DNA of 64,000 bases from positions 230,035 through 294,034 of IMG/VR virus record IMGVR_UViG_3300044568_003163. The stretch is one strand, 5' to 3'. Each line of letters starts with the position of its first letter. Positions within the stretch are counted from its first letter, which is position 1. Below are positions 20,027 through 45,102 of this stretch, piece after piece. The position numbers and the translations under genes are program-made. The notes below the pieces were generated by a model. The model saw nothing but the letters and a program-made list of their open reading frames with translations, was not told the origin of the DNA and ran no database searches.

Positions 20027-20770
20027 TTAGAATTTAGATTTAGCAGTAAACCAATAGATTTCAAAGCCTCCGTATTTCTCTCCCATACATAATACATTCA
20101 TTGTCGAATCAAAAGTTATATAATCATCTGCTTCTGCCTTTGGGAAATCCTTGATTTCCGCACCTCTAAATTTAGATTTCAACGCTTTATATGTGTCATA
20201 TAAATCATCGTCAAAATTTTCATCGAGACCAAATACATCTTTTGGTTCGGCTCCTAAATGTTTACATATTTCTCTTACTAATTCCTGTAACGGTTTGTCA
20301 TCACCTTTCTCATCAATATAAGTTTGAGCATCGAATTCTCCACTTAATTCAGCGATGGCTTTAGCAACACTTAGTTTACCTTCGTTAATCGTAGAAGAAC
20401 TAGAAGTTCTTACTAATCTACGAGAGTTTTTTTTAGAGGTAGAAACACCTTCTAAAACTTGTACAAAACCACCTTTAGCAATAACATCAGCAATTTCAAC
20501 ATCGGTCATCTGAACGTCATTAGCTTTGTCTTCACCATTAAATAAGTGAACTCCATCGGTTACACCTGCATAGTACATGTCAGTGTTAACGTTTCCATCT
20601 ACTGTGATAACATATTCTTTACCAGGTAACAATTCAGAAACTGAAGTTAAAGCTGGACCAGTTGGATCTTGTCCTGTAGTATTTTGTGGGTTGAATCCAT
20701 CAGCATCAGTAGCCTCCTGAATCTTGTAATGTTCGTTTACGAACTCGTCAAATGATAATAATTTTTTCAT
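20027..20770 (-). CDS. Putative internal head protein (CTS-like), two-domain
   Basis: Starts MKKLLSFDEFVNE; ends FTAKSKF like the neighbouring gene. Confidence 0.7.
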   Translation of the reverse strand: MKKLLSFDEFVNEHYKIQEATDADGFNPQNTTGQDPTGPALTSVSELLPGKEYVITVDGNVNTDMYYAGVTDGVHLFNGEDKANDVQMTDVEIADVIAKGGFVQVLEGVSTSKKNSRRLVRTSSSSTINEGKLSVAKAIAELSGEFDAQTYIDEKGDDKPLQELVREICKHLGAEPKDVFGLDENFDDDLYDTYKALKSKFRGAEIKDFPKAEADDYITFDSTMNVLCMGEKYGGFEIYWFTAKSKF

Positions 20771-20795
20771 TTTTAATTTATTGTTGTTTTTATTT

Positions 20796-21203
20796 TTATT
20801 TGATAAATTTAGATTTAGCAGTAAAGAAATAACTAATCATTCCATTATCTTCTGCTCTAACTACATTAGATTTTGTAAAATGATTTAAGTCTTCTCCCAT
20901 ACTGAAATCATTACTTGCAATAGATTTTGTTTCCGGAGTCATTCCGTTATATTCACTATCGATTTCATCAAAAAGCTGAACAAGATCGTCTTCCATTTCT
21001 TCTGAGCTTACCATAAAAATTTCAGTTGGTTTTGCTTTAAGAGCTTTAATTATTAAGTCGTATCCGTGATATTCACCTTCTATCTCTGTTATGTTCGGTA
21101 AATCTCTTGATTTTATAGCATCTTTGAAGAATGTTTCTTCATTTAGTGAGTTTAATTTGCTTGATTCATTTATAAATTCAGCAAAAGATAGTAAATTTTT
21201 CAT
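20796..21203 (-). CDS. Putative internal head protein (CTS-like), paralogue of the 20027..20770 C-domain
   Basis: Starts MKNLLSFAEFINE; ends FTAKSKFIK; late-motif variant at 21220-21229. Confidence 0.7.
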   Translation of the reverse strand: MKNLLSFAEFINESSKLNSLNEETFFKDAIKSRDLPNITEIEGEYHGYDLIIKALKAKPTEIFMVSSEEMEDDLVQLFDEIDSEYNGMTPETKSIASNDFSMGEDLNHFTKSNVVRAEDNGMISYFFTAKSKFIK

Positions 21204-21224
21204 TTGTTGTTTTTGTTTTTATAT

Positions 21225-21749
21225 TTATCCAATGTATGTTGGGTAACTTCCTCCAGATGCAGAATCCGTAGTGTTTCGATACCCTTTAACTTTTGGATTA
21301 GAATCTGCAGCAGATACAGGATTTAATGTACCAGTACCAACCATTTCCGCTTCTTCAACTTCTTCTCCTTCTTTTTTCTTAGGAGGATTTTCTTCTAATT
21401 CCTTTTTTAATTCCTTTTGAGCAACTACAGCTTCTGGATTTTGAATCTTTTCAGCTTTATCTCTGATTTTATTCATTTCTTCTTGACTTAATTCATCCTT
21501 AAGAATAAAAGTAGAAGGCTTTTCATTAGTAAATATTTTACTTCGGAAATAATCAAATACAAAAACTAATTTGTCTTGATCGTATACATTAAAAGTTTTA
21601 GAAAATGCGTCTTGTTCAAATCTATATTTTTCTAGATTTTCTATTTTCCATGCAGACCACCATTCTGGAGTCATAGCATATACTCGATTTAGATTAGATA
21701 GGCTAACGGATTCATTAACAAAATCTGCAAATTTTAAAAGACGATTCAT
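21225..21749 (-). CDS. Putative internal head protein (CTS-like)
   Basis: Start moved to MNRLLKFADFVNE (21749), which removes the overlap with gp55. Confidence 0.65.
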   Translation of the reverse strand: MNRLLKFADFVNESVSLSNLNRVYAMTPEWWSAWKIENLEKYRFEQDAFSKTFNVYDQDKLVFVFDYFRSKIFTNEKPSTFILKDELSQEEMNKIRDKAEKIQNPEAVVAQKELKKELEENPPKKKEGEEVEEAEMVGTGTLNPVSAADSNPKVKGYRNTTDSASGGSYPTYIG

Positions 21750-21762
21750 TTTGTTTATTATT

Positions 21763-22122
21763 TTAAACGGAATAAATACCTTCAGAATCACCATTACCTC
21801 CACTTAGAGAAATAGTTCCTTTGTATTTTCCTGGATGTAATTTATTCCATCCTTTTGCATATCCATTTTTTGCTATTTGAGTAAAATATGAAAATGCGTT
21901 TTTTGTTTTTTCTGGCTTAAATGATTTCCAGTATTTAAACAAATCCAAAAGGGCAAAAGCTATACAATCTTCTCTGTCCATCGGATCTTCATACGTTAAT
22001 CGTGTATTAGCTCGATAGGCAATTAAGATCAGCATTTCTTCTGCCTTCTTGGTTAATTTTTCTTGTTTTAAGGAAATGCATATTTCCTCGTAGAGTTCTT
22101 TTGGTTTTACGTAAATTGACAT
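21763..22122 (-). CDS. gp55: Late-transcription sigma factor (gp55-like), minimal
   Basis: YVKPKELY, DREDCI and FKPEKTKNAFSYFTQI (sigma region 2 core). Confidence 0.85.
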   Translation of the reverse strand: MSIYVKPKELYEEICISLKQEKLTKKAEEMLILIAYRANTRLTYEDPMDREDCIAFALLDLFKYWKSFKPEKTKNAFSYFTQIAKNGYAKGWNKLHPGKYKGTISLSGGNGDSEGIYSV

Positions 22123-22134
22123 TGATTTGAGGTT

Positions 22135-22356
22135 TTAAAATTTAACGTCTAAAAACTTTCTTTCAATTAACTCCTTTTTACCTGTCGGAAGAACGATTTC
22201 AACTTTATCAGAATTTCCACTTTTAGTGTATTGTAAAGCATTAACTTTAACCACATCTCCTTTTTTATAATTTTTAAAAGGAGATGTAATCGAAGCGTTT
22301 ACGTATTCATCTGATTTTGATTCATTCAACCATTCATCAAATGTAGATAGTTTCAT
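22135..22356 (-). CDS. Small putative internal head protein (CTS-like)
   Basis: Start moved to MKLSTFDEWLNE (22356). Confidence 0.6.
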   Translation of the reverse strand: MKLSTFDEWLNESKSDEYVNASITSPFKNYKKGDVVKVNALQYTKSGNSDKVEIVLPTGKKELIERKFLDVKF

Positions 22357-22370
22357 ATTAGAATATGTTT

Positions 22371-24035
22371 TTAGCAGCAAGTGATTTGTCCGCTTTTAAT
22401 TAAGTCGGTCACCTCTATCTCAGTCATATGCAAAGGTTGTGCATTAGTTTCAAGATCTTTCTGATTGAATATATAAGCTCCACCAGTTTCACCTACAAAT
22501 ATGTAACCTGCAACACCTTTAACGGTATATTCTTTACCTGCGGTTAAATCAGTAATTGATTGTACTGGAATATTTCCAGGAACTGCAGTTTCTCCAGCTT
22601 TAGGTAAGAAAGGAGTTTCAACACCTTCAACAACTTCTCCTTTTAATTTAGCAAGAATTACGTTTTGTTCTTTGATTTGTGATTCTAATAAAGATTTTGC
22701 TTGATCGATAAACTCAGATTTCCCTAAAGTTCTTTCTGCAGCATCAATATCCGCAAGTTTTTCGATGATAAATTTGATTCTACCTTCAACTTTTCCAAGT
22801 TCAGCATTTTTTCTAGAGATTTCAGCCTTTTCGTTTTCAACTAAATGAGATAATGATTCAGTTATATCGTAGTTCATAAAATCTTTTACCATTTCAACTG
22901 CTTCATTAGCAGAAGAAGCTTCAACAAGAGAATTTTCTTTCATTCCTTTGTTTATCTTTTGTACAAATACTCTATCTTCAACATTGAAGATAGAAACTGA
23001 AAGACCTTCAAAAACTGAAGATGATACTTTATAACCAAAGTCAAGTTCTTTAACTTTAGCACCTTCATTTACTGCTCTTTGAATAAGAGCAAGTTTATCT
23101 TGCTCATTAAATCTAACAAATCCAGAAGTAACTAATTGAGTAGCAAGTGAAGTAGATTCAACAAGTTTACCATTAAGAGTAACTTTAGGTTGTTCACCAA
23201 ATGTAATATCTAATACTGAGTTAGGATTAGGGTACATTCTCATTTGATTATCTCCAAATTTAGCAGATTCAGTAATCTTAACTAAAGAATTAAAATCGTT
23301 ATTACCAGCAAAAGCAGATTCAGAAATTGTATTTCCTTTAATTTCTAAGAATTTACCAGAAGAGTAAAAAGCAAAAGTATTTTCATCAATAGTTTCGATT
23401 GGTGAATATATTTTTTGAACTTTAAAATTAGGGTTTTGTCCATTTACTGCACCTTTTTGTGCTGAACAATACTCATAAAGTCTTTTAACAATAGGAATCC
23501 AAACTTCAGTTTCTAAACCTTCAACTACAGCAAATGTAGGATTTTCAGCATTAGAAGCTTCTCTAAGAGAATTAATTGCTTTTGTGTAATAAGCTTTGTT
23601 TCTATCTAATTCTAAGTCTCTAATTATAGACTCAATAAGAATATAAGTTTGATTAGCTTTGATAAATTCTTGACCTTCAGTGATGAAAGTTTTGATTTGT
23701 GGCATCCAAGAATAAGCATTTAATTCTTTGATCGCTGACTCAAGAATAGCAATTCTACCTAAAAGGTAAGAATCTGCGATTTGAGTTTTAGCTTCCGATA
23801 AAGTTGAAGCAGTAGCAATATGTTTAGCTCTGTTTTGTTCAACACCTTTACCGATTAATTCAGCATAAGCATCTTTAGCAGAAACCGAACCTTCAGCAAT
23901 TTCTAATGAAGCTATGTTACCGTAGTGTCTTTCAACAATCAATTTCGATGTATTGTTTCTGTCGATACTTTCAAGTAATTCAGAGAATTTAGCTTTAAGA
24001 GATGCAGAATCAAAGGTAGTTTTTAATTTTGACAT
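22371..24035 (-). CDS. Hypothetical putative virion protein
   Basis: Likely start MSKLKTT (24035); C-terminal module resembles the N-domain of 20027..20770. Confidence 0.7.
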   Translation of the reverse strand: MSKLKTTFDSASLKAKFSELLESIDRNNTSKLIVERHYGNIASLEIAEGSVSAKDAYAELIGKGVEQNRAKHIATASTLSEAKTQIADSYLLGRIAILESAIKELNAYSWMPQIKTFITEGQEFIKANQTYILIESIIRDLELDRNKAYYTKAINSLREASNAENPTFAVVEGLETEVWIPIVKRLYEYCSAQKGAVNGQNPNFKVQKIYSPIETIDENTFAFYSSGKFLEIKGNTISESAFAGNNDFNSLVKITESAKFGDNQMRMYPNPNSVLDITFGEQPKVTLNGKLVESTSLATQLVTSGFVRFNEQDKLALIQRAVNEGAKVKELDFGYKVSSSVFEGLSVSIFNVEDRVFVQKINKGMKENSLVEASSANEAVEMVKDFMNYDITESLSHLVENEKAEISRKNAELGKVEGRIKFIIEKLADIDAAERTLGKSEFIDQAKSLLESQIKEQNVILAKLKGEVVEGVETPFLPKAGETAVPGNIPVQSITDLTAGKEYTVKGVAGYIFVGETGGAYIFNQKDLETNAQPLHMTEIEVTDLIKSGQITCC

Positions 24036-24063
24036 GTTTTTATATTGGTTTTTTTGTATTTTA

Positions 24064-24741
24064 TTATTTATACACAGCACATGTAATAGATTTACCATAT
24101 AGTGGTATTAATGCTTCCATGTGTGCAGATTCAATGTAATCAACCATAGTACCAGTAAATAATGGTCTACCGGTTTGATCGTGACTGAAATGTCCTTGAG
24201 TTCCTATTTGCCATAATGGATTAGAACCTGAAGTAATTACTGCTCTGTATTTTTCGTCTCCATTAGTTTTCCAAATTTCAATAGTAGAAGCACCATTAGT
24301 TTTTACGTTGAAGTACTTATTTTCACCTGAAGTAAGATTTAAACTACCACAAGGTAAAATAGCACAACCACCACCTCGATAACCACTACTAAATTGTCTA
24401 GTAGTTTTGAATTGTTCAGAAGAAGGTCTTTTTGAGCCAGGTAAAACGTTGATGGAATTCATCGATTTATCAACATCCATTCCTAATGAACCAGCTCGAT
24501 CAAAGAATACCTTTGTTACTGGATGATCTGATCCGAGAATTTGATCTGCGGCAACACCTCTATCGAATGCTTTATTTTTGTCTGTAATTAACTTACACAT
24601 TGTGTTAGCTAACATTAACATTTTAGATTCATCTCCTTTAGATTTTGTAACAATATCATTAATTCGTTGTAGGTCTTTTTGAGTAGCTTCAAGAACTAAA
24701 GACTCTAAAATAAAATCTTCGTATGTTTGTAAATTTTTCAT
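24064..24741 (-). CDS. Putative internal head protein (CTS-like)
   Basis: Starts MKNLQTYEDFILESLVLE. Confidence 0.7.
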   Translation of the reverse strand: MKNLQTYEDFILESLVLEATQKDLQRINDIVTKSKGDESKMLMLANTMCKLITDKNKAFDRGVAADQILGSDHPVTKVFFDRAGSLGMDVDKSMNSINVLPGSKRPSSEQFKTTRQFSSGYRGGGCAILPCGSLNLTSGENKYFNVKTNGASTIEIWKTNGDEKYRAVITSGSNPLWQIGTQGHFSHDQTGRPLFTGTMVDYIESAHMEALIPLYGKSITCAVYK

Positions 24742-24742
24742 G

Positions 24743-25732
24743 TTATTTAGCAGCTCCTACACCTTTAAGGTTAGGATATCTTTTTAAAACTGATGCAACT
24801 ACTTGTTTTTTCAAGTCTGCATATTGTGGCCATGTAGCCCAAACTAATGCAGTTTTTGCATGTTTCTCGTCGTGTATTGGCCATGCTTTACGATCAGGAA
24901 ATACAAAATCTGTAGGTTTCAATTTATCCTTTTCGGTTTGAGATAACTTCTCAAGAACTTTATGATAGTCTAAAACAGATTCTAAAACCTCATCTTCAAG
25001 ACCAGTCATATCAAATCCCATAGATTCAGAAAGAATCTTTTTGATTTTTTCCATTTTCTGAGCATCTTTTAGAGCATCTTTTAGAGCATCAATTTTTGCA
25101 GTATCTTCAGAACTTTCTCCTTCAGGTTTTTCTTCACCTTCTTTAGATTTTTCTTCATCATCTTTAAGTTTATCTAAAGCTTGTTTAACTCCGTCATCAG
25201 TTTTTGCTTTTGATGGGTCAATTCCTTTAGCTAAATCTTTTGTGTCAGCTTTAAGGATATCGTCCTCTTCTTCATAGAGACCACCTTTAGATTCTTGTAT
25301 GAAATCGATATCTTCAACATCAAATTCGTAATCTGAACCATCTTCGGTATATCCGGTAAATTGAGTTCCCTTTTCACCTTTTAATTCTTTTGGATCGACA
25401 CTATACCAATCGTTCTTAATGAAAACGGTTACTGGCTTTCCATTAGTTTGAGTATATAGGTCATGAGCAGTTTTTCCTTTGAATCTACTTCTAGATGCTT
25501 CACTTAATGCATCAGTGTCTATTGATTCGTTTAAGAATACCTTTTTAAGTACATTTATTTTTCTCTCTTCATCGACTCCAATTGTAGTCAAGAAAAGATA
25601 TATTTGTTCTGGATTTTTTCCTTCAGATGCTAGTTTCTGAACAATTGGAAATAAAGAACCAGCTCCGTAATACGAATATTGACCGAATAGATTCTCATTT
25701 ACGAATTCTTCGTATGATTTAATTTTTGACAT
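24743..25732 (-). CDS. Putative internal head protein (CTS-like), modular
   Basis: Starts MSKIKSYEEFVNE; acidic linkers; C-terminal FVFPDRKAWPIHDEKHA module; late motif at 25752-25760. Confidence 0.7.
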   Translation of the reverse strand: MSKIKSYEEFVNENLFGQYSYYGAGSLFPIVQKLASEGKNPEQIYLFLTTIGVDEERKINVLKKVFLNESIDTDALSEASRSRFKGKTAHDLYTQTNGKPVTVFIKNDWYSVDPKELKGEKGTQFTGYTEDGSDYEFDVEDIDFIQESKGGLYEEEDDILKADTKDLAKGIDPSKAKTDDGVKQALDKLKDDEEKSKEGEEKPEGESSEDTAKIDALKDALKDAQKMEKIKKILSESMGFDMTGLEDEVLESVLDYHKVLEKLSQTEKDKLKPTDFVFPDRKAWPIHDEKHAKTALVWATWPQYADLKKQVVASVLKRYPNLKGVGAAK

Positions 25733-25751
25733 TGATAGACTAAATTTTTAT

Positions 25752-25760
25752 TTATATATC
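25752..25760 (-). promoter_or_regulatory. Putative late promoter GATATATAA
   Basis: 19 nt upstream of 24743..25732. Confidence 0.65.
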
Positions 25761-25772
25761 TTAGTTAATATG

Positions 25773-26969
25773 TTAGTTAGGTGTTGTGGATGGATTATCT
25801 CCAGTTGGCCATGGATTATCTCCAGGGAAAGGTCGATTATATGGTGTTGCTGGTGCAACATAAAGACCCCAGTATGTAGGATTAAGTGATGGCGGTATAG
25901 CTGCAATTGTTGGATCTGTTACGTCGGCAATGCAATTATAAGAAACTCCATTATAAACTACTAAATCTCCTACAATCACAGAAGCATAAACTCCGGTTCC
26001 TCCAATTGTTCCAGGAGTAGGTAATCCACTCGGAGTAGGAGTTCCTATCGGTATACTTGTAGTAGAAGAATATGTAGCACCTGGAGACCAAGGTCCTTTC
26101 CAGTTATATCCGGATTGTCCAATATAGCTATTAGAAAGTGGATCAGAATTTATACCACTCATTTCACCTATAGTTGTACTATCACCAGCTACTGCATTGC
26201 CTCCTATTCTCGGTCCTGGATCGTTAGTAGTCATTGAAGTTGAACCTTGAATATCTCCTGAAAGTAAGATATTAGATTGAATATTACCCATATTGTTTCC
26301 GGCAAATAATGTAGTTCCATCTTTGAATACTGGTATATGAGATTTAATTTCTAAATCAAAAGTTAGTTTAAATTCTTTCTTTTCAGTAAAAGAAAATTCA
26401 ACAGATCTTTCTGATGTTATTTCATCCGGAAATAACATCAGACATGGAATTCGAGTATATCCAATATCTACATTATAGGCTTTTGCTTTAAAGAAAGTTC
26501 TAATAATAGCTTCTGAACATTTTAACTGATCTAAAATTGAGTCTAAATAAATTTCGACACTCAGATTCATTAATATAGGAACCATAAAGGCTTCAGAATT
26601 ATATTGGTTTAAAGTTCCATCGTCTTCTTGGACGATATGGTCCATTCTAACATATTTATTAGTTATAGATTGAGTTTCAATAGAAAACGAGCTAAAATCT
26701 ACAATACCTCTAGGAATTTGATTGTAAAATGTTTCTGCCTGTAAAAATTCAGGATCGAAATCAATATTATTAAGGAAATTATCATTTAAGTATCTTTCAG
26801 CACCAGTTGTACTAAAATAGAAAGGAACCTTAATAGGCATTTTTTGCTCTATTGAGGTCCCTATTTGGTTATTCCACCCTATATGATCTGATAAGGTAGC
26901 TAAACTTCCTACTAAAATGTTACGTAAAGCAACATTGTCTTTATTAAAATGTAAATCGTATGCTGACAC
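25773..26969 (-). CDS. gp15: Tail completion / sheath stabiliser (gp15-like) with C-terminal extension
   Basis: IKVPFYFS, QIPRG and VPILMNLSVEIY...DQLKCSEAI pattern; GTG start; P/G/T-rich tail. Confidence 0.65.
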   Translation of the reverse strand: MSAYDLHFNKDNVALRNILVGSLATLSDHIGWNNQIGTSIEQKMPIKVPFYFSTTGAERYLNDNFLNNIDFDPEFLQAETFYNQIPRGIVDFSSFSIETQSITNKYVRMDHIVQEDDGTLNQYNSEAFMVPILMNLSVEIYLDSILDQLKCSEAIIRTFFKAKAYNVDIGYTRIPCLMLFPDEITSERSVEFSFTEKKEFKLTFDLEIKSHIPVFKDGTTLFAGNNMGNIQSNILLSGDIQGSTSMTTNDPGPRIGGNAVAGDSTTIGEMSGINSDPLSNSYIGQSGYNWKGPWSPGATYSSTTSIPIGTPTPSGLPTPGTIGGTGVYASVIVGDLVVYNGVSYNCIADVTDPTIAAIPPSLNPTYWGLYVAPATPYNRPFPGDNPWPTGDNPSTTPN

Positions 26970-26986
26970 TAATTGTACTTATTTTA

Positions 26987-26995
26987 GTATATATC
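26987..26995 (-). promoter_or_regulatory. Putative late promoter GATATATAC
   Basis: 17 nt upstream of the gp15-like gene, between it and gp46. Confidence 0.65.
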
Positions 26996-27003
26996 CACTT
27001 TTC

Positions 27004-36050: not shown

Positions 36051-36416
36051 TTATTTAGTTTCTTCGTTTTCTTCATAATCATCATACCAAGCGAAATTAT
36101 CTTCTTCTTGATCGTAATCGTATTCAACACAAGGCCAAGGTCTGCCTTTCTCGTCAAGTTTTACCCAAACTTTATCTTCGAGTGTAATAGGACCTAAATA
36201 TGCATCTCCTTCTTGTACAACCCATTTCCAATCTACTCCTTCAATTCCTTCTGGATTTTCACCATATTCACCTTTTACATATTCCCAATTACATGAACAC
36301 CCCATACTATCTACTGAAGATATGCAATCATCACATAAAAACGGATTAGCACCGCTCGAATATCCAGGTGCATAACACCATTTAGCTGGTTTGCCGCAAT
36401 CACAATGTTTTGCCAT
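36051..36416 (-). CDS. Cys-rich hypothetical protein
   Basis: CDC, C, CDDC, CSC and C; acidic tail. Confidence 0.65.
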   Translation of the reverse strand: MAKHCDCGKPAKWCYAPGYSSGANPFLCDDCISSVDSMGCSCNWEYVKGEYGENPEGIEGVDWKWVVQEGDAYLGPITLEDKVWVKLDEKGRPWPCVEYDYDQEEDNFAWYDDYEENEETK

Positions 36417-36448
36417 ACTATTTTATTTTTAAGTTATATGAAGACAAC

Positions 36449-36481
36449 AAAAGCGAAAATCAACTAAATGACTTTCGCTTT
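36449..36481 (-). terminator. Putative terminator after nrdA
   Basis: Stem AAAGCGAAA/TTTCGCTTT with an internal TCA/TGA pair and a T-rich 3' end. Confidence 0.6.
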
Positions 36482-36506
36482 AAATTTGTTAACAATTTTA
36501 ATTTTA

Positions 36507-38132
36507 TTAGCTGTGACATGAAGCACAATCTAAAATATCTCTAGCAAAAGATTGAGCAGAACTTTGACTAAATTGATAGTATAAAGTTTTAACTCCTTCT
36601 TCGTGGGCATAAAGATACAATGCATTAATATCCTTAGCCGAAACTGATGGATGTATCATTAAATTTAATGATTGTGATTGGTCAATGAATTTCTGTCTTT
36701 GAGCCGCTTGTAGTACTATTTCTTTTGGAGAGATTTCAACAAAAGATTTAAAAACTTCTTTAGTAGGAAAGTCTAAATGTTGAACACTTCCGTCTCTTTT
36801 TAATATTCCTTCCCAAACATCTGGAGTATTTAAACTGTATTTGTCTAGCTCTTGAATTAAGAAAGGATTTTTATAAATTGTTTTTGATTTGGCTAAATCT
36901 TTAATAAAATAATTAGATTTGATTGGCTCAATTCCCATACTTACCTGTCCTAAAATAAATGAACTGCTTTTGGTTGGAGCAATTGCAACTAAAGTAGTGT
37001 TAGCATAACCCGGTCTAATTGAACGGTAACCTTTCTCATCATGTAACCATTTTGAAGCTGCTTCACTCTTTTCTTTTAGTGTTGAGAAGATTTCATGATT
37101 TAATTGTTTTGCTTGAAGAGAATCAAATGTAATTAATTTAGCCTGAAATAGTGAATGGTAACCCAATACTCCAAGACCCAATGCTCTGTGGTCATTTGCA
37201 AATCTCCATGCTCTTTTCATTCCAGGCATATTATAAGACTTATTAACGAATTCGTCCATAACTGCGTTTAAGAACATTGTATAAACTTCAATTGCATCAG
37301 TTTCTTTAATTTCTTCCCAATGTAATAAATTGATAGAACCTAAACAACAAACAAATGAATTAAAACTGTCGGTTGGTAATTGAATTTCACTACATAGATT
37401 ACTTGCAGTGATTTCTAAGCCTAACTCTTTATATGGTGAATTAGAGTTTGAGTTGTCTTTAAACATAATGTAAGGAAAACCAAATTCATTACGTCTTTGA
37501 ATTATTTTAGCCCAAATTTTACGTTTGTCTGCGTCTCCAGCTTTCATTTCAGCAATCCAAGCGTCAGTAACGGTAACTCCATATTGTAGGTTTTGAATTG
37601 GATTTCCTTCAGTTCCAATATCTAAAAATTCTAAAATGTCATTATGCTCGACCGGTAACCAAACTGCACATGCGCCTCTTCTAGCCTCTGATTGTTTACA
37701 TACATCAACTGTTGTATCGTATAATCTGGCATAATGTACAGGACCATCGGCAAATCCGCCCGTCGAAATTTTAGTACCTCGTGCTCGGATGTTTCCTAAA
37801 AATGCAGAAGTTCCTCCTCCGTATTTTGACATCATTCCAACTTCTCTACTTCCATTTAAAATACTATCTAAAGTATCAGATACGTTACTCCCATAACAAC
37901 TAACTGGAAGTCCTTTGTCTTTTCCAAAATTAATCCAAACTGGAGTTGATAAACTATAGAATCCTCTACTCATATAGTCCTCAAACTTTTTTGCAAAACC
38001 TTCGATTTTTAAGTATTTTTCTGCGGTGTTTGCTACATCTTTAATTCTCTGCTCTGGAGATTCCGTAATATAACCTCTAGATAAAAATGTTCTACTGTCT
38101 TCATTAAGCCAGTAATTCTTTTCATATTCCAT
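36507..38132 (-). CDS. nrdA: Ribonucleotide reductase class I alpha subunit (no ATP cone)
   Basis: LPVSC, GGGTS, ASNLCSEI, IAPTKSSS, TLYY and C-terminal CASC. Confidence 0.95.
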   Translation of the reverse strand: MEYEKNYWLNEDSRTFLSRGYITESPEQRIKDVANTAEKYLKIEGFAKKFEDYMSRGFYSLSTPVWINFGKDKGLPVSCYGSNVSDTLDSILNGSREVGMMSKYGGGTSAFLGNIRARGTKISTGGFADGPVHYARLYDTTVDVCKQSEARRGACAVWLPVEHNDILEFLDIGTEGNPIQNLQYGVTVTDAWIAEMKAGDADKRKIWAKIIQRRNEFGFPYIMFKDNSNSNSPYKELGLEITASNLCSEIQLPTDSFNSFVCCLGSINLLHWEEIKETDAIEVYTMFLNAVMDEFVNKSYNMPGMKRAWRFANDHRALGLGVLGYHSLFQAKLITFDSLQAKQLNHEIFSTLKEKSEAASKWLHDEKGYRSIRPGYANTTLVAIAPTKSSSFILGQVSMGIEPIKSNYFIKDLAKSKTIYKNPFLIQELDKYSLNTPDVWEGILKRDGSVQHLDFPTKEVFKSFVEISPKEIVLQAAQRQKFIDQSQSLNLMIHPSVSAKDINALYLYAHEEGVKTLYYQFSQSSAQSFARDILDCASCHS

Positions 38133-38155
38133 TCTGTATTTGTTGTTTTTTAATT

Positions 38156-39133
38156 TTAAAATAAGTCGTCTTCAGTAATTGCCTTAGACTTTTTGTTGTA
38201 GTCAATTGATTTTTTGTAGAAGAAATCACCTTCTTTAGTTGAAAGAATCTCAACATCAAACCACAAAGTCTTTTCAATTTCTGTAAAATCAACCTCAAAT
38301 ACAGGTTTCATTCCTATTCGTTGTAAAGAGTTATTGAAACGATTTTGAATGAATTGCTTGATAGTTTCTTTCGATAGGAAATCGAGTTCACCCTTTTCGA
38401 AAATCCAATCAAGAATTTTAACCTCTGCTATGTATGCTTTTTTACAGGCAGAATCTATAAGATTTTCAAATTCTTCATCAAACCATTCTGGGTTTTCTGC
38501 CTTAATAATATTGATTAATTCCGATCCAAAGTTTCCGTGGATCTCCTCTTCTTTACTTGTTGCCTCTACCACATTTGAAATACCTTTAAATAGGTTTTTC
38601 TCCTTGTTAAAAGACATCATAATAAAGAATTGGCTAAATAGACTAACATGTTCTATAAACAATGAAAATAGTAATACGGATTTTGTATACATTTTATTGT
38701 CCTTACTTCTTGTACCGTCCAAATACTTACTTAAGTATGCAATTCTATCTTTAATTGCCGGAATCTCTATTACATGTTGGAATTCATCTTCTAATCCTAA
38801 GATTCTTAATAATTGTGCGTAAGCATCTTTATGTCTTACTTCACTTTCGGCAAAAGTCATACCGACATCTCCGATTTCGGTGATTGGCATTCTTTTATAA
38901 AGGTCCGCCCAAAAGGTTTTAACGTTAACCTCGATTTGTGCAATTGCAAGCATCGATCTTTTAATTACTTCACGTTCTGAATCGGTTACTTTAGTCATAA
39001 AGTCATCGATATCAGTTGTAAAGTTAAATTCTGTGTGAATCCAATATGAATGTCGGATTGCGTCTTTGTACGCTAATAATGAAGGGTATTCGTATGGTAA
39101 AATATTTACCCTTTTTTCAAAGATGTTGCTCAT
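38156..39133 (-). CDS. nrdB: Ribonucleotide reductase class I beta subunit (class Id-like)
   Basis: AQIEVNVKTFW, ESEVRHKDAY, IEHVSLFSQF and KEEEIH metal-ligand motifs. Confidence 0.93.
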   Translation of the reverse strand: MSNIFEKRVNILPYEYPSLLAYKDAIRHSYWIHTEFNFTTDIDDFMTKVTDSEREVIKRSMLAIAQIEVNVKTFWADLYKRMPITEIGDVGMTFAESEVRHKDAYAQLLRILGLEDEFQHVIEIPAIKDRIAYLSKYLDGTRSKDNKMYTKSVLLFSLFIEHVSLFSQFFIMMSFNKEKNLFKGISNVVEATSKEEEIHGNFGSELINIIKAENPEWFDEEFENLIDSACKKAYIAEVKILDWIFEKGELDFLSKETIKQFIQNRFNNSLQRIGMKPVFEVDFTEIEKTLWFDVEILSTKEGDFFYKKSIDYNKKSKAITEDDLF

Positions 39134-39134
39134 T

Positions 39135-40520
39135 TTAATTTTTTAATTTTGACATTTTTCTTTCAATCTCTAAATGTATGTTCTTTTTTCTCTTTCTCTC
39201 TGAATATAACGTAGTAAGAATTTCCTTAAGTACGGAAACTTCTTGATTGTCATATATTGCGCCTGTAGTAGAAACTATAAAGTTCGGATCTGCTTTATGT
39301 TTTTCTAGTTTGTCTGTATCTTGGGTTTTTGTTATAAATGATTCCGGAGAAACATTAAATTGTCTCATAATTGAAGGGTATAGGGAAGCGTAATCAAAAC
39401 ATGTTACAGCTCTAAACATACCTGCTTCAGGTTCTTTAACATAAGCACCTTCATACGAACCTTTTGGTGTATCTACTTTCTTATCGGCAATTACCATGTT
39501 TCTTTTAAAATAACCTTTCCATAAAAGAGCTTCAGTTAAATTTACTGCAGAAGAAGCTTTATAAATAGACAAATCACATAAACAAGAGACAGACAATACT
39601 GAGTTAAGTGTCTTTAATTTTTTGTGAATTAAGCACACTAACGCAGCATCTATGGCATTGTAGAGAATATATTTATCATAATCGTTTTCATACAGCTCTT
39701 GTAAAGTTCCACTATAATGTAATTTAGTTACACCTAATACCGAATTAGCAACCCAATCAAGTTTATTGCTTTCTTTGATCGCTACGGTTCTATCCCATCT
39801 ACGATATACGTCTAGATAATCAATAATTCCGATGTGTAATGGTATTAGATCGTTTCCTTGTAGTTTTCCAGAGGGTGAAGCCTTGGATACGTCGATGTTT
39901 AATCTTTTGCATCGATTAGAAATATATTTCCAGTCAAATCCCATAAAGTTCCAACCGATAGCTAATGAGAAATTAGGTAAAAATTTGTTGATGAAAGTAT
40001 ACATCATATTGTACTCATCTTCAAAGTACATATATTTAAAATTCCAATCGCCGAATTCTTTAAGATATTCTCGATGCTTGTCGAAGATTTCTTTCTCTTG
40101 TTCTTTTGATATTTTTTTCCAACCTAGAACTAATGTGGAATTTGCTTCTGTTGCAATCGCAATAGTAGTTATTCTTTCTCTAGCTATTTCTGGTTTAGGG
40201 AATCCATCAATAACCTCGGTTTCGATATCTATTGATTGTACTTTAGGAAAGTTTAATGCGGAAAGTTCTTCTCTTTCATCTGGTGGTAGAGTATTAATGA
40301 ACTCGTAAACCGACCATTTATTAAGTCTTTTTTCGGCAATCTTTTTAACGGGTTTGCCATCCCAATTCTGAAAATCTGGATTTCTTCGAGGATCTGTTAT
40401 TGAACAAACAGTCCAATTCAATATATGAGGAATTTCGAATTTTTTAATTTTAACTCGACCTTCTTTGTCATAGTAGGAGATGACTAATTCGCTTTCGTTA
40501 TTTTCTACGTCTAATATCAT
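39135..40520 (-). CDS. gp43: Family B DNA polymerase, N-terminal subunit (3'-5' exonuclease plus motif A; gp43A-like)
   Basis: Exo I SIDIET, Exo II GWNFMGFD, Exo III YNAID and motif A FDYASLYPSI; ends in the first fingers helix. Confidence 0.93.
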   Translation of the reverse strand: MILDVENNESELVISYYDKEGRVKIKKFEIPHILNWTVCSITDPRRNPDFQNWDGKPVKKIAEKRLNKWSVYEFINTLPPDEREELSALNFPKVQSIDIETEVIDGFPKPEIARERITTIAIATEANSTLVLGWKKISKEQEKEIFDKHREYLKEFGDWNFKYMYFEDEYNMMYTFINKFLPNFSLAIGWNFMGFDWKYISNRCKRLNIDVSKASPSGKLQGNDLIPLHIGIIDYLDVYRRWDRTVAIKESNKLDWVANSVLGVTKLHYSGTLQELYENDYDKYILYNAIDAALVCLIHKKLKTLNSVLSVSCLCDLSIYKASSAVNLTEALLWKGYFKRNMVIADKKVDTPKGSYEGAYVKEPEAGMFRAVTCFDYASLYPSIMRQFNVSPESFITKTQDTDKLEKHKADPNFIVSTTGAIYDNQEVSVLKEILTTLYSERKRKKNIHLEIERKMSKLKN

Positions 40521-40523
40521 TAA

Positions 40524-40745
40524 TTAAATTTTAGGAATGAATTCTTTATTTATATGACCGCATTTCGAACATTGGAATGTTGGAATTGGAACAAATGAAT
40601 CTTTTGGTGCTCCAGTAACTAACTTAGAAACTTTACGAATAAAAACTACTTCAGTAAAGGTTTCACTGGCACAATTTTCAACTTCACATATAACGGCAAT
40701 AGAATTTTTCTTAATGTCTATGCCTGGTGCTATTAAATTTTCCAT
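40524..40745 (-). CDS. Small Zn-ribbon protein
   Basis: CEVENC and CSKC. Confidence 0.7.
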   Translation of the reverse strand: MENLIAPGIDIKKNSIAVICEVENCASETFTEVVFIRKVSKLVTGAPKDSFVPIPTFQCSKCGHINKEFIPKI

Positions 40746-40747
40746 AA

Positions 40748-41191
40748 CTAATTAATTCCAGTTGAACCAAAACCACCTTCACCTCTTTCGGTAGCCTTAC
40801 CATTCCATAAAGTATTTTCGTCTTCTACAACTTCTACTGGTGCATATACAATAGGCATCAATAAACATTGTGCAATTTTTTCTCCAGGACTTAATGCAGT
40901 TGAATCATTACCGACATTCATTAAGTGGATATGAATTTCACCTTGGTAATCCTCGTCTATAACACAAGCACCTACGTCGAGATGCTTTTTAGTGGCTACA
41001 CCAGATTTGTTCATCATAAGAAATACATGATTTTCTGGTACATTAATTTTTAATCCTGCTGGAATTAAGATAGAATCACCTGGACGCAAAAATTGCGGAG
41101 TGAAATCGTTTGGTATAAATAGGTCGATGCCGGCAGATTGAGGAGTGCCTCTTGACGGATCTTTGACGTCTCTAACTTTTAAGAACTTCAT
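40748..41191 (-). CDS. dut: Trimeric dUTPase
   Basis: SAGIDL, NKSG, VIDEDYQGEI, IAQ and RGEGGFGSTG. Confidence 0.95.
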   Translation of the reverse strand: MKFLKVRDVKDPSRGTPQSAGIDLFIPNDFTPQFLRPGDSILIPAGLKINVPENHVFLMMNKSGVATKKHLDVGACVIDEDYQGEIHIHLMNVGNDSTALSPGEKIAQCLLMPIVYAPVEVVEDENTLWNGKATERGEGGFGSTGIN

Positions 41192-41235
41192 AATGACATT
41201 GTTTTATCATTATATGTAAGACGAATCACGAAGAT

Positions 41236-41457
41236 TCAGTCTTTGTTAGATCGAGACGTAAAGTAATATGCTCCAAAAAATAAGAGTGATAGGGCATAAA
41301 AGATAGCGTCCGTAAGCCAAAATGAGCCTGTCCACTTCATTATCAGAGCGAATAGGGCATCGAATCCAAGAGGGTTGAAGAAGGTTGCCAATATAAGAAA
41401 TATTGTCGCAACATGTTTTCTTGTTGGTTTTTTTGTTTTTTTGCTTGGGATAATCAC
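41236..41457 (-). CDS. Small membrane protein
   Basis: Frame of track ORF 41236..41592 with probable GTG start at 41457; FFNPLGFDALF...FYALSLLFFGAYYF hydrophobic helices. Confidence 0.55.
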   Translation of the reverse strand: MIIPSKKTKKPTRKHVATIFLILATFFNPLGFDALFALIMKWTGSFWLTDAIFYALSLLFFGAYYFTSRSNKD

Positions 41458-41494
41458 TGTCCATTTTATGGTTTTGTTATTTGAGCCGCAAACC

Positions 41495-42208
41495 TTAAAA
41501 GGCAGCTCGTACGGTTGTTTGTCCTTTAATAAAATCTTTGAAATTCTTAAAGGCTTTTTTCTTTTTAGAAGAAGGATTTGGATTATCTCCACTTCCTATT
41601 TTATCTCCTTGAGGTAATGCAATAGGACCCATACCATTAACTGAACTTAATGTAGCTATAGGTGAATTTTCATCTAGCTCAACGTATTCTTTTAATATAG
41701 AATTTTTTGCTTTTTTTCTAAATTCTAAGCTTTTTTCGTTATCGGTTTCCAATTGTTTTTTATTAGTTTTATAAATTTTTAAATTTGAAAGTGCATCTTT
41801 TAATTGTTTATCTGTTGCAAATTCAATAAAAGGACTTTTTATTACGGTATTCCATTTAGCATTAGCCGCATTATCATAGGCAATCCTCAAGTAACAATGA
41901 TTCCTCCAAGTAGTTTCTTTTCGATATTGTACATCCAATTCATCAGCAAGCTTTTTAATCTTATCAGCTAACTCATTTTTTTCTTGATTTGTAGAATTTT
42001 CATTAATCTCATTTGATTCTTTCGTAACAGGTAAATCATCATGTTTAGTTTTAGCAAAGTCTCTTAAATCTTTAAGAGACATTCCATCTGCTAAATCTTG
42101 TATTTGTTTTCTGTACTCTGCATCAATGTCTTTAGCTTGAATATCTCCTTTTTTAAGAGCATAAGCCTGACCCATTAATCTTTGTTGTGATTGAGATAAT
42201 GCCGGCAT
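41495..42208 (-). CDS. DUF3008-like N-terminal domain protein, putative virion cargo
   Basis: MPALSQSQQRLMGQAYALKKG...MSLKDLRDFAKTKHDDLP matches my recollection of DUF3008. Confidence 0.65.
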   Translation of the reverse strand: MPALSQSQQRLMGQAYALKKGDIQAKDIDAEYRKQIQDLADGMSLKDLRDFAKTKHDDLPVTKESNEINENSTNQEKNELADKIKKLADELDVQYRKETTWRNHCYLRIAYDNAANAKWNTVIKSPFIEFATDKQLKDALSNLKIYKTNKKQLETDNEKSLEFRKKAKNSILKEYVELDENSPIATLSSVNGMGPIALPQGDKIGSGDNPNPSSKKKKAFKNFKDFIKGQTTVRAAF

Positions 42209-42214
42209 AATTAA

Positions 42215-42784
42215 TTACGATTCTTGAGCTATCATTGCATCAATAACGTCTGAGCAAATATATCCTTTTGCTTTAGCGAATTGTTTTGCTAATGCTAAAA
42301 CTTTCTTTTCTCCGGCAGAAGTTACTTCATTTTCCTTACCCATTTCATTATTATCATTCCATTCTTCAACGGAAGCTTCTACTTCTTGTTGTATTTGGAT
42401 GGCAGTTGGATTTTGTATTTTTGCAGATTTTTCGTGATAATCTTCCCAATAGTTTGCATCGAAACCTTCATTAACTGGTTTGTTGATTGTAGTTTTTAAA
42501 GTATCTAATTGTACTTTCAATTTTGGATCTAATCCTCTTTCGATACCCCAATTAAATGAAGCTTTAATTAGCATATGTAAAGGAATATCAGCATTTTTCT
42601 TACCGTAAGGAGAAGTTTTTAGCCAATTTAAGTAATGTTCTGCTAAGTCTACTGACATTTTGATGCCTTCTGCTCTAGAAGTATTACCTGCTATTATTTC
42701 TTCAAGTAGTGTTGCAGCTTTAACTCTAGCTTCGTTTAGCATCGATTCATTTACGAATTCTTCGTAGGTTGGGATGTGTTTCAT
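42215..42784 (-). CDS. Putative internal head protein (CTS-like)
   Basis: Starts MKHIPTYEEFVNESMLNE; internal PVNE site. Confidence 0.7.
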   Translation of the reverse strand: MKHIPTYEEFVNESMLNEARVKAATLLEEIIAGNTSRAEGIKMSVDLAEHYLNWLKTSPYGKKNADIPLHMLIKASFNWGIERGLDPKLKVQLDTLKTTINKPVNEGFDANYWEDYHEKSAKIQNPTAIQIQQEVEASVEEWNDNNEMGKENEVTSAGEKKVLALAKQFAKAKGYICSDVIDAMIAQES

Positions 42785-42785
42785 A

Positions 42786-43448
42786 TTATTTGCAGTTGTA
42801 TATTGTTTTTTTGTATTGTCTAGCCATTTGATTGAAATGAGATTCTCTACCGTTATAAAAAGTAAGAGAATAACTTCCTGGTTTTAATTTTTTCTTTAAT
42901 GTATCGTAACCTAAAGTAGCGTAACAAACTACAATATTAGCTTGAGTTGTTATAGCTGCAAAAATACCAAATGTAGTTGCAGAGATGCCAGCAATTTTAA
43001 GGTTTTTATCGTCTGGATTTAATCCAAATGCTCCTGAAGCTCTAGCAAATCCATCTACGGAAACTTCACCAGAAACAAATCCCTTTTCTTTATGTAATTT
43101 AGTAAGACGCTTGATTTCGTCAAAAATTTCTTCTGCTTCTGTATCACTTATTGTAATGTCTTTAAGGGCCTCATTTAAAAAATTTTCATTTTCTAGAATT
43201 CCTTCTACTACTTGTGGCATACCATTATAGAATGCAGCATAAGTATTTCCCTTTTCGAAATATTTAGATAATTTATAAGATCCGTTTTTAGCACCTACCA
43301 CATAAACAGTTTCACCTCTTTCACTTTTCTTTGAAGCCTCTCGTTTTATGTTATCTAGGTCATTTGCTCGAACATTACCTGAACCAGCTAAAGGACCGAA
43401 TTCATTTAAGTTCTCATTAAGATATTCATCGAATGTCGTTAATTTCAT
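42786..43448 (-). CDS. Putative internal head protein (CTS-like)
   Basis: Starts MKLTTFDEYLNENLNE; internal FLNE site. Confidence 0.7.
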   Translation of the reverse strand: MKLTTFDEYLNENLNEFGPLAGSGNVRANDLDNIKREASKKSERGETVYVVGAKNGSYKLSKYFEKGNTYAAFYNGMPQVVEGILENENFLNEALKDITISDTEAEEIFDEIKRLTKLHKEKGFVSGEVSVDGFARASGAFGLNPDDKNLKIAGISATTFGIFAAITTQANIVVCYATLGYDTLKKKLKPGSYSLTFYNGRESHFNQMARQYKKTIYNCK

Positions 43449-43458
43449 TGTTATATTT

Positions 43459-43710
43459 TTATTTTGCGTAAGCTTTTTGGGTTTTACGTAATTTAGTTTG
43501 AATGTTGATAACGTTAATTTTAGCGTTTATTAATTCAAGTTGAACCTTAAACAGACCAATCTTTTCAGGATGTTCCTTTATAGATTTTTGTATCTTTGCG
43601 GCTGACATTTTTAATGCAGCAATAGAATCCGAAGTTTTTTGTTCAGGTGTTCTTCGATCTTCAGAAGCTTCGTTAAGATATTCATCGAATGATGGTATGT
43701 AATTAAGCAT
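43459..43710 (-). CDS. Putative internal head protein (CTS-like)
   Basis: Starts MLNYIPSFDEYLNE. Confidence 0.65.
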   Translation of the reverse strand: MLNYIPSFDEYLNEASEDRRTPEQKTSDSIAALKMSAAKIQKSIKEHPEKIGLFKVQLELINAKINVINIQTKLRKTQKAYAK

Positions 43711-43714
43711 TGTA

Positions 43715-44047
43715 TTAAATTGTTTTTCCTATTATTATTTTGCAATCTTGATCGAAATTTCGTTTCTCATCGTCAGGATATGAATTTGAAATAATTATCT
43801 TTCCATTTTCTCTTACTATGATATTATACGAGATTCCTTCTCCATAAGATATAAAACGATAAGTTTCTTCTCGATCTTCGTCTTTAGTCATGAATGCATT
43901 GATGTTCTTAGCATCTTTATTCTTTTTAGCAAATTTTTCTTTTGCCTCATCATCAGGACTCCAAGTCTTTTTGGCTAATTGAAGTCTTTCGATAGAATAC
44001 CTAACCTCGGCTTCATTAACAAAGTCACTGAATTTTTTAAGTTTCAT
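43715..44047 (-). CDS. Putative internal head protein (CTS-like)
   Basis: Starts MKLKKFSDFVNE. Confidence 0.65.
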   Translation of the reverse strand: MKLKKFSDFVNEAEVRYSIERLQLAKKTWSPDDEAKEKFAKKNKDAKNINAFMTKDEDREETYRFISYGEGISYNIIVRENGKIIISNSYPDDEKRNFDQDCKIIIGKTI

Positions 44048-45102
44048 TATAGCCCTAAGTCTCTTTTGGCCATCATGATAGCAACTTTATAATATTGAGC
44101 AGTTCCTTCGTCGGATGTAGAAGTAAGAGCTTTTGTAAGTTCTTTAATATTATCATTTCCATCAAATTTGAATTTAGTTAATGCATTTGCAGGAACTCTA
44201 AAGAAATCTGAAAGTCTAGAAATACATTCTTTTTTAATTTGTTCTTCCGGATATACAATTCTTGATTCAGAAATAACATCTTCATTTTCAGATTTATTCT
44301 GTAAAGCAATAAGATCGTTTATTTGTTTTCTTTTACCGTTAGTCAATTCAACTACTTTATGAGAGATTCCGTAATATTTCTTGTCTCCTGGAGAAAGTGA
44401 TTTATTCATACGAGATTTCATTGCAACTAATGCATCTTTGTCATCGCCAGTTTCTATAACGTTACCCATATCTCTACCTACAAAAATAGGAAATGAATTT
44501 CGAGTTCCAATAGATCCACCGGTTCTAACTAATGCAAATTGTTTAGATAAATCAACAGCACCTTCAAAAATAGGCTCAGTTTTTGATTCATTAATTGTAT
44601 TGAACTTAAAAAGTCCGATTGATTCTTTAACCATTTCGTTGGTAGTTTTTTTATTTTGTAAAATGTGTTGTAATACTCGTTTTCCGTAAATTGAAAGGGT
44701 TAATAAAGGCTTTCCTGCATTTTTAAATGATTGGAAATATTTTTCATTTCGATCAAACCATTGCTTTTGGTTGATAGTCTTTCCTCTATTCTTCGACAAA
44801 TCTAAAAAGAAATGGTCTAAGTCTTCTTTAGTTACGAACTGTGCACCTACAAATTCAATTACTTTGTCTCGTATAGGTGCTGAACTGTTTGCAAGTTTAG
44901 ATGCATATTGCCCGTATTTTCTTTTAATTTGTACTCTTTCTCCTATGTAATCTCCATAGTTTTCACTTATTGCAACAATGTCATTTATTCGAGTAAATTC
45001 ATCACCAGAATTAATAGTCACAACCGTACCTTCTTCTAAAAGTACTTTGATAGATTCTCTACAAATAAGAATTTCATTTAGAAAGTCTCTGGTAAAATTC
45101 AT
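44047..45102 (-). CDS. Hypothetical modular protein, putative virion cargo
   Basis: Starts MNFTRDFLNE; several internal hydrophobic-x-E sites; AATATATAA motif at 45118-45126. Confidence 0.65.
   Translation of the reverse strand: MNFTRDFLNEILICRESIKVLLEEGTVVTINSGDEFTRINDIVAISENYGDYIGERVQIKRKYGQYASKLANSSAPIRDKVIEFVGAQFVTKEDLDHFFLDLSKNRGKTINQKQWFDRNEKYFQSFKNAGKPLLTLSIYGKRVLQHILQNKKTTNEMVKESIGLFKFNTINESKTEPIFEGAVDLSKQFALVRTGGSIGTRNSFPIFVGRDMGNVIETGDDKDALVAMKSRMNKSLSPGDKKYYGISHKVVELTNGKRKQINDLIALQNKSENEDVISESRIVYPEEQIKKECISRLSDFFRVPANALTKFKFDGNDNIKELTKALTSTSDEGTAQYYKVAIMMAKRDLGL

Follow-up and report, generated by a model that had tools for sequence, protein, structure and literature searches.

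A T4-type capsid-targeting and protease system with probable shuffled polyprotein cargo in a 294-kb uncultured phage

Results

The window examined here is a stretch of 64,000 nucleotides (nt), bases 230,035–294,034 of the 294,034-bp IMG/VR record IMGVR_UViG_3300044568_003163. The record is listed as viral and represents a 294-kb uncultured phage genome: a single contig with a G+C content of 32.8%, a completeness of 91% as estimated by CheckV, and nearly all genes on the minus strand. The window carries a T4-like set of head genes, including a putative prohead protease, together with a series of cargo genes whose products share a short N-terminal tag and in part contain further sites of the kind that such a protease would cut. 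We consider it probable that these elements form an expanded T4-type capsid-targeting and protease system with shuffled polyprotein cargo. Because modules strung between predicted protease sites in these proteins are found separate or reordered in relatives, the phage probably packages and delivers more proteins than it has cargo genes. The packaging, cleavage, retention, ejection and effector roles of the cargo are inferred by analogy with the internal proteins of T4.

Positions are those of the window unless stated otherwise. Open reading frames (ORFs) were called with our own greedy caller and tags with our own regular expression; no alternative genetic code was used or needed. Genome-wide, 55 tagged minus-strand ORFs were compared with 364 untagged ones, a set that may include further virion proteins. 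Φ stands for [ILVFMYW], and in the motif statistics sites are counted as internal when they lie beyond the tag plus 15 residues. L numbers denote loci: L001 lies on the present genome, L055–L074 on LR756500.1 and the other related loci named below on IMG/VR contigs; proteins with P numbers come from a large protein collection. A megablast search with 24 kb of sequence returned zero matches among GenBank phages, where relatives are found at the protein level only.

A shared N-terminal tag resembles the T4 capsid-targeting sequence

At least 55 minus-strand ORFs genome-wide, 16 of them in the window along with a few variants, begin with a tag or propeptide of 10–17 residues (typically 12–14) with the consensus M-K-N-[IL]-P-T-[FY]-[ED]-[ED]-F-[LVI]-N-E. 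The sequence logo has T at P8, F/Y at P7, E/D at P6 and at P5, F at P4 and L/V/I at P3, followed by N at P2 (48/55) and E at P1 (55/55), with mostly S or A at P1′; L, V or I occupies P3 in every one of the 55 tags and in 33 of the 38 internal sites. The N-termini of T4 IPII and IPIII read MKTYQEFIAE (AF158101), and the 55 genes here start with a short propeptide that is like the IPIII targeting sequence and ends in Φ-x-Glu. This decapeptide serves T4 as its capsid-targeting sequence; residues 4 and 7 govern targeting and residues 8 and 10 processing, and gp21 cleaves after the Glu of L/I-x-E (PMC9026906). Judged by its sequence, the tag is a close analogue of MKTYQEFIAE of the T4 internal proteins.

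The tags differ among genes at synonymous codon positions, which points to selection on the peptide and not on the DNA; a role of the tag DNA as a conserved recombination site was not supported, for the same reason. BLAST comparison among the 55 tagged proteins returned two weak pairs only. The mature parts are thus non-paralogous, so that the internal sites described below represent independent events, and paralogy or internal repeats were rejected as the cause of motif enrichment. About ten of the N-terminal tags are directly followed by a second site five residues downstream. Genome-wide, the leaders upstream of the tagged genes are A-rich and have no Shine-Dalgarno sequence, which would be expected if the host belongs to the Bacteroidota.

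Modules between internal sites are separate or reordered in relatives

A preliminary description of positions 20027–45102 had read five tagged proteins as polyproteins in which apparent domains are separated by internal hydrophobic-x-E sites. All of the strings that it listed are present in the translated minus-strand ORFs of the five proteins, and the placement of the sites between domains was borne out both by comparison with relatives and by two AlphaFold models. The five genes are as follows.

42215..42784, minus strand: cargo gene, 189 amino acids (aa); tag FVNE (Glu13), then MLNE (Glu18) and PVNE (Glu106); module A 19–106, PVNE junction at nt 42467–42478, module B 107–189
42786..43448, minus strand: cargo gene, 220 aa; tag YLNE (Glu12), then NLNE (Glu16) and FLNE (Glu93); module 17–93, FLNE junction at nt 43170–43181, module 94–220
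20027..20770, minus strand: cargo gene, 247 aa; tag FVNE (Glu13), then KIQE (Glu19) and TINE (Glu130); module 1 to about Glu107 (QVLE, nt 20450–20461), basic 23-aa linker, TINE junction at nt 20381–20392, module 2 131–247
24743..25732, minus strand: cargo gene, 329 aa; tag FVNE (Glu13), then FLNE (Glu69, nt 25526–25537), ALSE (Glu78, nt 25499–25510) and FIQE (Glu147, nt 25292–25303); in order, tag, helical module up to FLNE, inserted β module 79–147 with FIQE at its end, acidic disordered stretch, conserved C-terminal module
44047..45102, minus strand: cargo gene, 351 aa; atypical short tag FLNE (Glu10); junctions YIGE (Glu55, nt 44938–44949), TINE (Glu172, nt 44587–44598) and VISE (Glu279, nt 44266–44277)

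In relatives, the modules between sites recur either alone, as tagged genes that start at the same residue, or within fusions of other composition and order; this recurrence covers all five proteins, including the ALSE, FIQE, TINE, PVNE, FLNE and VISE junctions. L025 and L026 carry module B of 42215..42784 as a separate tagged gene with the same starting Gly. This module is also the C-terminal part of 920–1030-aa multi-module proteins in L021, L024, L027 and L028, where the junction before it reads ES-V-V-T-E (L021, L024 and L028) or ES-A-T-N-E (L027); module A lies mid-protein in those of L021, L024 and L028. For 42786..43448, module 94–220 is a stand-alone tagged gene in P0012, the mature end of which starts with ALKD exactly as after FLNE. 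In P0010 the same tag is joined to this module with module 17–93 missing, and L006 has module 17–93 fused to different modules. Syntenic orthologs of 20027..20770 in L032, L033, L038, L042 and L043 are 107–118 aa long and consist of module 1 only, those of L045 and L048 continue with other modules after V-N-E, and P0002 and P0003 encode module 2 by itself, with a tag. In 24743..25732, residues 79–147 are missing from five orthologs, with the alignment gap bounded by ALSE and FIQE, and in L021 and L028 this β module recurs with a short S-x(0-1)-Φ-N-E linker behind it. In L020, the 44047..45102 module between Arg56 and TINE has V-N-E on one side and I-N-E plus a pentapeptide on the other; P0015 has the module after TINE directly behind the tag, P0020 encodes the last module alone with a tag, and P0016 has the modules in reversed order, joined to the C-terminal module of 42215..42784. 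Thus, independent units are joined by linkers that match the predicted protease site. The 920–1030-aa proteins of L021, L024, L027 and L028 comprise some ten modules behind a variant N-terminal tag (…SFKSFTE), and include tandem copies of a short 'GNAFG…FEF[DN]GK[TK]YKV' repeat.

The same pattern was observed elsewhere in the genome. A 470-aa protein outside the window (L001:3016-4428, minus strand) is built of six modules, and at least three of these exist elsewhere as stand-alone tagged genes (L015; L013 and L017; L026). Conversely, the product of gene 7579–7986, which stands alone in the window, forms an inner module of a protein in L015, where it follows A-M-N-E (94% identity). A tagged 395-aa protein (genome 171723-172910, L001:5723-6910) unites the products of two tagged genes that are adjacent in L007; the fusion looks recent, with the second tag nearly intact inside it.

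Modules that follow an internal site here were compared with relatives in which the upstream context differs, and the start of the module was projected onto the relative. A Φ-x-E was present within two residues of the projected start in 39 of 43 distinct junctions with differing upstream context, and Φ-[NT]-E in 32 of the 43, compared with Φ-x-E at 103 of 870 (12%) random positions inside modules. Of the four exceptions, two carry N-E preceded by T at P3; in the remaining two, homology and a V-F-E or M-F-E site start about five residues further into the module. This test replaced an analysis of the end-points of BLAST high-scoring segment pairs as breakpoints, in which 28 of 63 lay within eight residues of a site, without a control; such end-points are fuzzy because the linkers themselves align. 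The comparative evidence is the strongest line for independent modules.

An extended Φ-N-E linker is enriched in tagged proteins

The loose hydrophobic-x-E string, in terms of which the preliminary description had been given, is not enriched: [ILVFMYW]-x-E occurs 24.35 times per 1000 residues in the internal parts of tagged proteins and 25.7 times in untagged non-head proteins (p=0.47), and it arises about every 40 residues in any protein. A test for enrichment of [ILVF]NE in tagged proteins had also been proposed, and the narrower motif was indeed enriched when tagged and untagged proteins were compared, with [ILVFMYW]-N-E at 3.31 versus 1.67 per 1000 residues (odds ratio 1.98, p=0.002). Within-protein, composition-preserving shuffles of the tagged proteins gave 11.1 ± 3.2 such sites against 29 observed. 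The extended linker E-[ST]-x-Φ-N-E showed the sharpest difference, with 9 occurrences among the 8,749 residues of the tagged set and none among the 66,339 of the untagged set (p=4e-9); counted over whole proteins it has two untagged matches only, one of them in the 189-aa product of 12072..12641. An absence of enrichment would have spoken against the polyprotein description as a whole; on this count it is supported for Φ-N-E, and very strongly for the extended linker, and not for loose hydrophobic-x-E.

The internal sites share E at P6, S at P5 and G or A at P1′. The linkers have lost the targeting half of the tag (F-x-x-F) and retain Φ-N-E, as would be expected if each polyprotein has a single tag and each joint a single cut site. 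Since P8 is often hydrophobic, many linkers contain a tandem pair of sites spaced five residues apart, and these tandem sites would give eight predicted pentapeptides. Φ-N-E is absent after the tag in 31 of the 55 tagged proteins and absent from the internal parts of 38, so that the polyprotein description is not valid for every tagged protein. Proteins without an internal site are mostly shorter than 200 aa; they also include large single-domain enzymes, such as the RimK-like product of 7986–9482 and a 307-aa protein outside the window.

As a negative control we used the 462-kb phage LR756500.1, which has 17 strict tags of the form MKYIKEYEEF-Φ-x-E. Its tagged proteins showed no internal enrichment of any tested motif. 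Internal sites are therefore not a by-product of the tag, and the idea that polyprotein architecture is a general trait of tagged cargo was rejected. Tags of this form were looked for in Lak-A2 and none were found. The cargo of LR756500.1 includes a leucine-rich-repeat (LRR) protein and an HExxH/vWA-like protein, and at least four of its eight longest tagged proteins share a C-terminal D-F-G-F-F-D or similar motif.

Structure models place junctions in low-confidence stretches

The 470-aa protein was modelled with AlphaFold from a 19-row alignment (A2; alignment A3 misplaced three fragments), giving a mean predicted local distance difference test score (pLDDT) of 66.9 and a predicted template modelling score (pTM) of 0.29. 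Internal stretches with pLDDT<50 (39–60, 87–94, 160–165, 238–244, 325–336 and 411–420) make up about 15% of the chain, and the junction residues Glu 94, 160, 165, 243, 334 and 418 (FIAE418) all fall inside them; taken as five independent junctions, the probability of such a placement by chance is about 1 in 10,000. The low pTM of the model would fit an arrangement of beads on a string. The model of 24743..25732 had a mean pLDDT of 57.8, with values below 50 from residue 149. FLNE69 lies in a predicted loop and FIQE147 at the end of the β module, before the disordered acidic stretch.

Foldseek searches of both models against the PDB gave no match at E≤0.001. Sm/SH3-like matches for the β module of 24743..25732 were weak Foldseek rows and were not trusted. 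Pfam searches with 20 tagged proteins yielded RimK-like and cytidylyltransferase-like matches only, with no peptidase domain found among the 20, and Pfam and PHROG scans of the cargo proteins gave almost no matches.

The head module includes a gp21-like protease with a site-rich tail

The head genes of the window give PHROG hits to the gp20 portal, the gp23 capsid protein, gp2 and gp4, i.e., to a T4-like head module.

12749..14371, minus strand: major capsid protein, T4 gp23-like (PHROG match)
15174..17087, minus strand: prohead protease (S77, T4 gp21-like) with a coiled-coil, scaffold-like tail, 637 aa
17144..18757, minus strand: portal protein, gp20-like (PHROG match)
18802–19545: gp2-like DNA end protector
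19542–20018: gp4-like head completion protein
14482..15102, minus strand: tagged gene, 206 aa, lying between the genes for protease and major capsid protein; double site, INE followed by SILNE
12072..12641, minus strand: untagged 189-aa protein adjoining the capsid gene, with ESVINE (Glu57) and DLNE (Glu75)

The product of 15174..17087 was assigned to S77 by PHROG 207 (E=2e-40) and Pfam PF03420 (E=1.5e-12), and the similarity to T4 gp21-type proteases covers the first ~140–290 of its 637 residues. As in an S77 protease, His72 and Ser127 (in GELDHP and ISSR) align with His85 (GELNHP) and Ser140 (VSSR) of T4 gp21, which we take to be its catalytic residues. The tail of about 470 aa holds all ten Φ-N-E sites of the protein, at residues 166–613. 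The density over the whole protein is 15.7 per 1000 residues against a background of 1.7, the highest among untagged ORFs with at least three sites. The tail thus served as a positive control for the motif, in keeping with the multiple cuts in T4 core proteins (PMC9026906). Similarity of the tail to T4 gp22 was not significant (E=0.3). The first site, RVNE166, lies directly past the protease domain and may serve to release the protease from its tail.

Several neighbours of the protease gene also bear sites. The capsid protein 12749..14371 opens with six residues ending in INE, and the portal 17144..18757 has GINE at residues 49–52, ending at Glu52; together with the 12072..12641 protein, these may be additional protease substrates. 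The product of 14482..15102 is probably a prohead core protein. Beside the head genes, 9959–12070 (minus strand) encodes a 703-aa Lys/Glu/Pro-rich low-complexity protein with T-G-P-T-G-type repeats and no family match, the C-terminal end of which is WNE plus five residues.

The capsid protein matches capsid genes of T4-like cyanophages and of huge phages. Among GenBank phages the nearest capsid gene is that of the uncultured phage LR756500.1 (56% identity), with the Lak megaphages next at 36%. Freshwater huge phages predicted to infect Bacteroidetes have a similar head-gene region, in the account of which tags and cleavage are unmentioned (PMC9723584). Gaps between the head genes of the window are too short for a bS21 gene; no search for bS21 was made.

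Further tagged genes of the window

The remaining tagged genes that we annotated are these.

7351..7578, minus strand: 75 aa, outside the range of the preliminary description
7579..7986, minus strand: 135 aa, stand-alone
7986..9482, minus strand: RimK-like ATP-grasp enzyme, 498 aa (Pfam PF08443, E=1.9e-34), no internal Φ-N-E
20796..21203, minus strand: 135 aa, second site SLNE (Glu22)
21225..21749, minus strand: 174 aa, read from an internal Met preceding the tag
22135..22356, minus strand: 73 aa, read from an internal Met
24064..24741, minus strand: 225 aa, tag ending FILE, then SLVLE (P2 Leu, not Asn)
43459..43710, minus strand: 83 aa
43715..44047, minus strand: 110 aa
51389..51715, minus strand: 108 aa

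The double site FILE/SLVLE of 24064..24741 is conserved in L032, L033, L038, L042 and L043. The product of 7986..9482 is apparently a glutamate-ligase-like enzyme targeted to the capsid; its C-terminal part gives a weak match to the Zn_protease family, a frequent companion of RimK. Two small minus-strand genes, 52783–53145 and 53146–53445, start with MKTFKE… and MKTFNE…, like the T4 IPI N-terminus MKTFKEF, and these starts may be a second type of tag.

Discussion

In the arrangement that we propose, the tag would dock each protein into the prohead core, and the head protease would cleave after the Glu of Φ-x-E, with a preference for [LIV]-N-E in this phage. Many cargo genes would encode polyproteins, in which a single tag serves two to six unrelated modules of ~60–150 aa and the joints are short exposed linkers that are themselves optimal sites. 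At the frequent tandem pairs (Φ-x-E, then S-x-Φ-N-E) a pentapeptide would be released. Cleavage in the prohead would free each module with an N-terminus identical to that of its stand-alone tagged version, and the pieces would remain with the DNA and be ejected into the host. Splitting in silico at Φ-N-E alone turns the 55 genes into 77 pieces of at least 30 aa, with a median of 103 aa and an interquartile range of 77–147 aa, i.e., within the size range of T4 IPI, IPII and IPIII (precursors of 95, 100 and 193 aa). For positions 20027–45102, 11 tagged genes would give 16 pieces.

Taken further, the cargo may be plug-and-play. Any small module would enter the capsid either under a tag of its own or attached to the end of another module, with a protease-site linker in between. 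The joined modules would be supplied in one-to-one amounts and separated by the head protease, and phages would exchange modules freely. The 55 genes would then yield at least 77 products, which would form a fast-evolving arsenal, probably for anti-defence or host takeover. To this extended version we give about an even chance.

Several observations weigh against the polyprotein reading. Cleavage at the internal sites is predicted from sequence. Loose Φ-x-E is not enriched, so that single weak sites such as KIQE and ALSE could be uncut, and ALSE78 lies inside a predicted helix in the model of 24743..25732, which makes the ALSE site less certain. The models are of modest confidence (mean pLDDT 58 and 67) and come from shallow alignments. 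Linkers may have been inherited along with their modules, which would inflate the 39 of 43 junctions somewhat. Almost no module has a recognisable function, and the label 'effector' is for that reason an analogy. Finally, our own regular expression and greedy caller missed at least two tagged genes.

One alternative is that these are ordinary multi-domain cargo proteins that lose the N-terminal tag only, with the internal Φ-N-E linkers remaining as uncut fusion scars or recombination joints. The 395-aa protein (171723-172910) does show that fusion creates internal remnants of a tag. However, most linkers have lost F-x-x-F yet retain E-S-x-Φ-N-E, and the motif is retained across many differing upstream contexts. 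An exposed, flexible and optimal site would also be hard to shield from an active low-specificity protease in the prohead, and the synonymous variation of the tags leaves only weak DNA homology for recombination. We therefore regard uncut scars as unlikely. To a similar degree we doubt that the tagged proteins, though cut, are parts of the prohead core or scaffold that are degraded and expelled in maturation like T4 gp22, gp67 and gp68. T4 core proteins are indeed cut into several fragments (PMC9026906), a tagged 206-aa gene lies between the protease and capsid genes, and the sites are densest in the scaffold tail. However, the predicted pieces (interquartile range 77–147 aa) are compact in the model and larger than peptides that leave the capsid, some cargo proteins are enzymes (RimK-like and cytidylyltransferase-like), and the pieces are highly diverse, non-paralogous and shuffled, which matches T-even internal proteins under host-defence pressure (PMC3012670). 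Least probable by far is that the sites are chance short tripeptides in the Asn/Glu-rich proteins of an AT-rich genome: hydrophobic-x-E is equally frequent in untagged proteins and Φ-N-E has an observed/expected ratio of ~1.3 there too, but the shuffles (11 sites against 29), the extended motif (9 against 0) and the match of sites to module boundaries and to low-confidence dips in the model contradict chance for the set as a whole, although it may account for single weak sites.

The T4 internal proteins are the closest parallel of this cargo. IPI, IPII, IPIII and Alt, with gp21, likewise combine a short similar tag, a cut after the Glu of Φ-x-E (predicted here, by an S77 protease with the conserved His and Ser) and T4-like head genes, and their cargo is diverse and fast-evolving, as here (PMC3012670, PMC9026906); they also provide a precedent for anti-restriction factors (PMC3012670). 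The phage differs in having at least 55 tagged genes where T4 has a handful, in a strong preference for Asn at P2 with a frequent tandem second site five residues downstream, and in multi-module shuffled cargo, which is not described for T4 in the literature examined. The T4 core proteins gp22, gp67 and gp68 are cut into several fragments at L/I-x-E (PMC9026906), and the protease tail with its 10 sites parallels them. They are scaffold, however, with fragments that are mostly small peptides, whereas the cargo modules here are folded in the model, unrelated and mobile.

The giant phages phiKZ, 201phi2-1 and SPN3US (gp175 or gp245) also have a T4-like protease that cuts after Glu and many packaged, ejected proteins (PMC10052503), and some precursors in phiKZ-type systems are cut at several sites (PMC10052503, PMC9026906). 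Their motif is A/S-x-E with a small P3 (S/A/G), unlike the L/I/V at P3 here. Their multiple cuts lie within discarded N-terminal propeptides of 111–254 aa and leave one mature product, whereas the tags here are 10–17 aa long; they have no short common tag, and ~80% of the SPN3US head proteins remain uncut. The polyvalent proteins (Iyer et al. 2017) that phages and conjugative elements encode similarly join several unrelated domains in one polypeptide, are thought to be packaged or delivered with DNA and are shuffled between elements, but they carry known conflict-related enzymatic domains and, where processed, an embedded metallopeptidase (PMC5512222). Among the 20 cargo proteins scanned here there was no embedded peptidase and almost no Pfam domain, which sets them apart from that class; by analogy with T4, loading would be by the tag and release by the head protease at linkers. 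In the literature searched, we found no report that connects capsid-targeting sequences to huge phages, nor any description of shuffled polyprotein cargo.

The capsid of T4 contains a few tagged internal proteins, and a host restriction enzyme is disarmed by at least one of them. The phage described here appears to scale this device more than ten-fold and to add a polyprotein layer. If this is true, the tag together with the Φ-N-E linker rule would list the delivered proteome of a huge-phage clade straight from metagenomes, and dozens of small, independently folding modules would become candidate anti-defence or takeover factors. Fusion, fission and permutation at protease-site linkers would then be a route of gene evolution in these phages, and the linkers a natural design for the co-packaging of several proteins under one tag in phage-based delivery vehicles.

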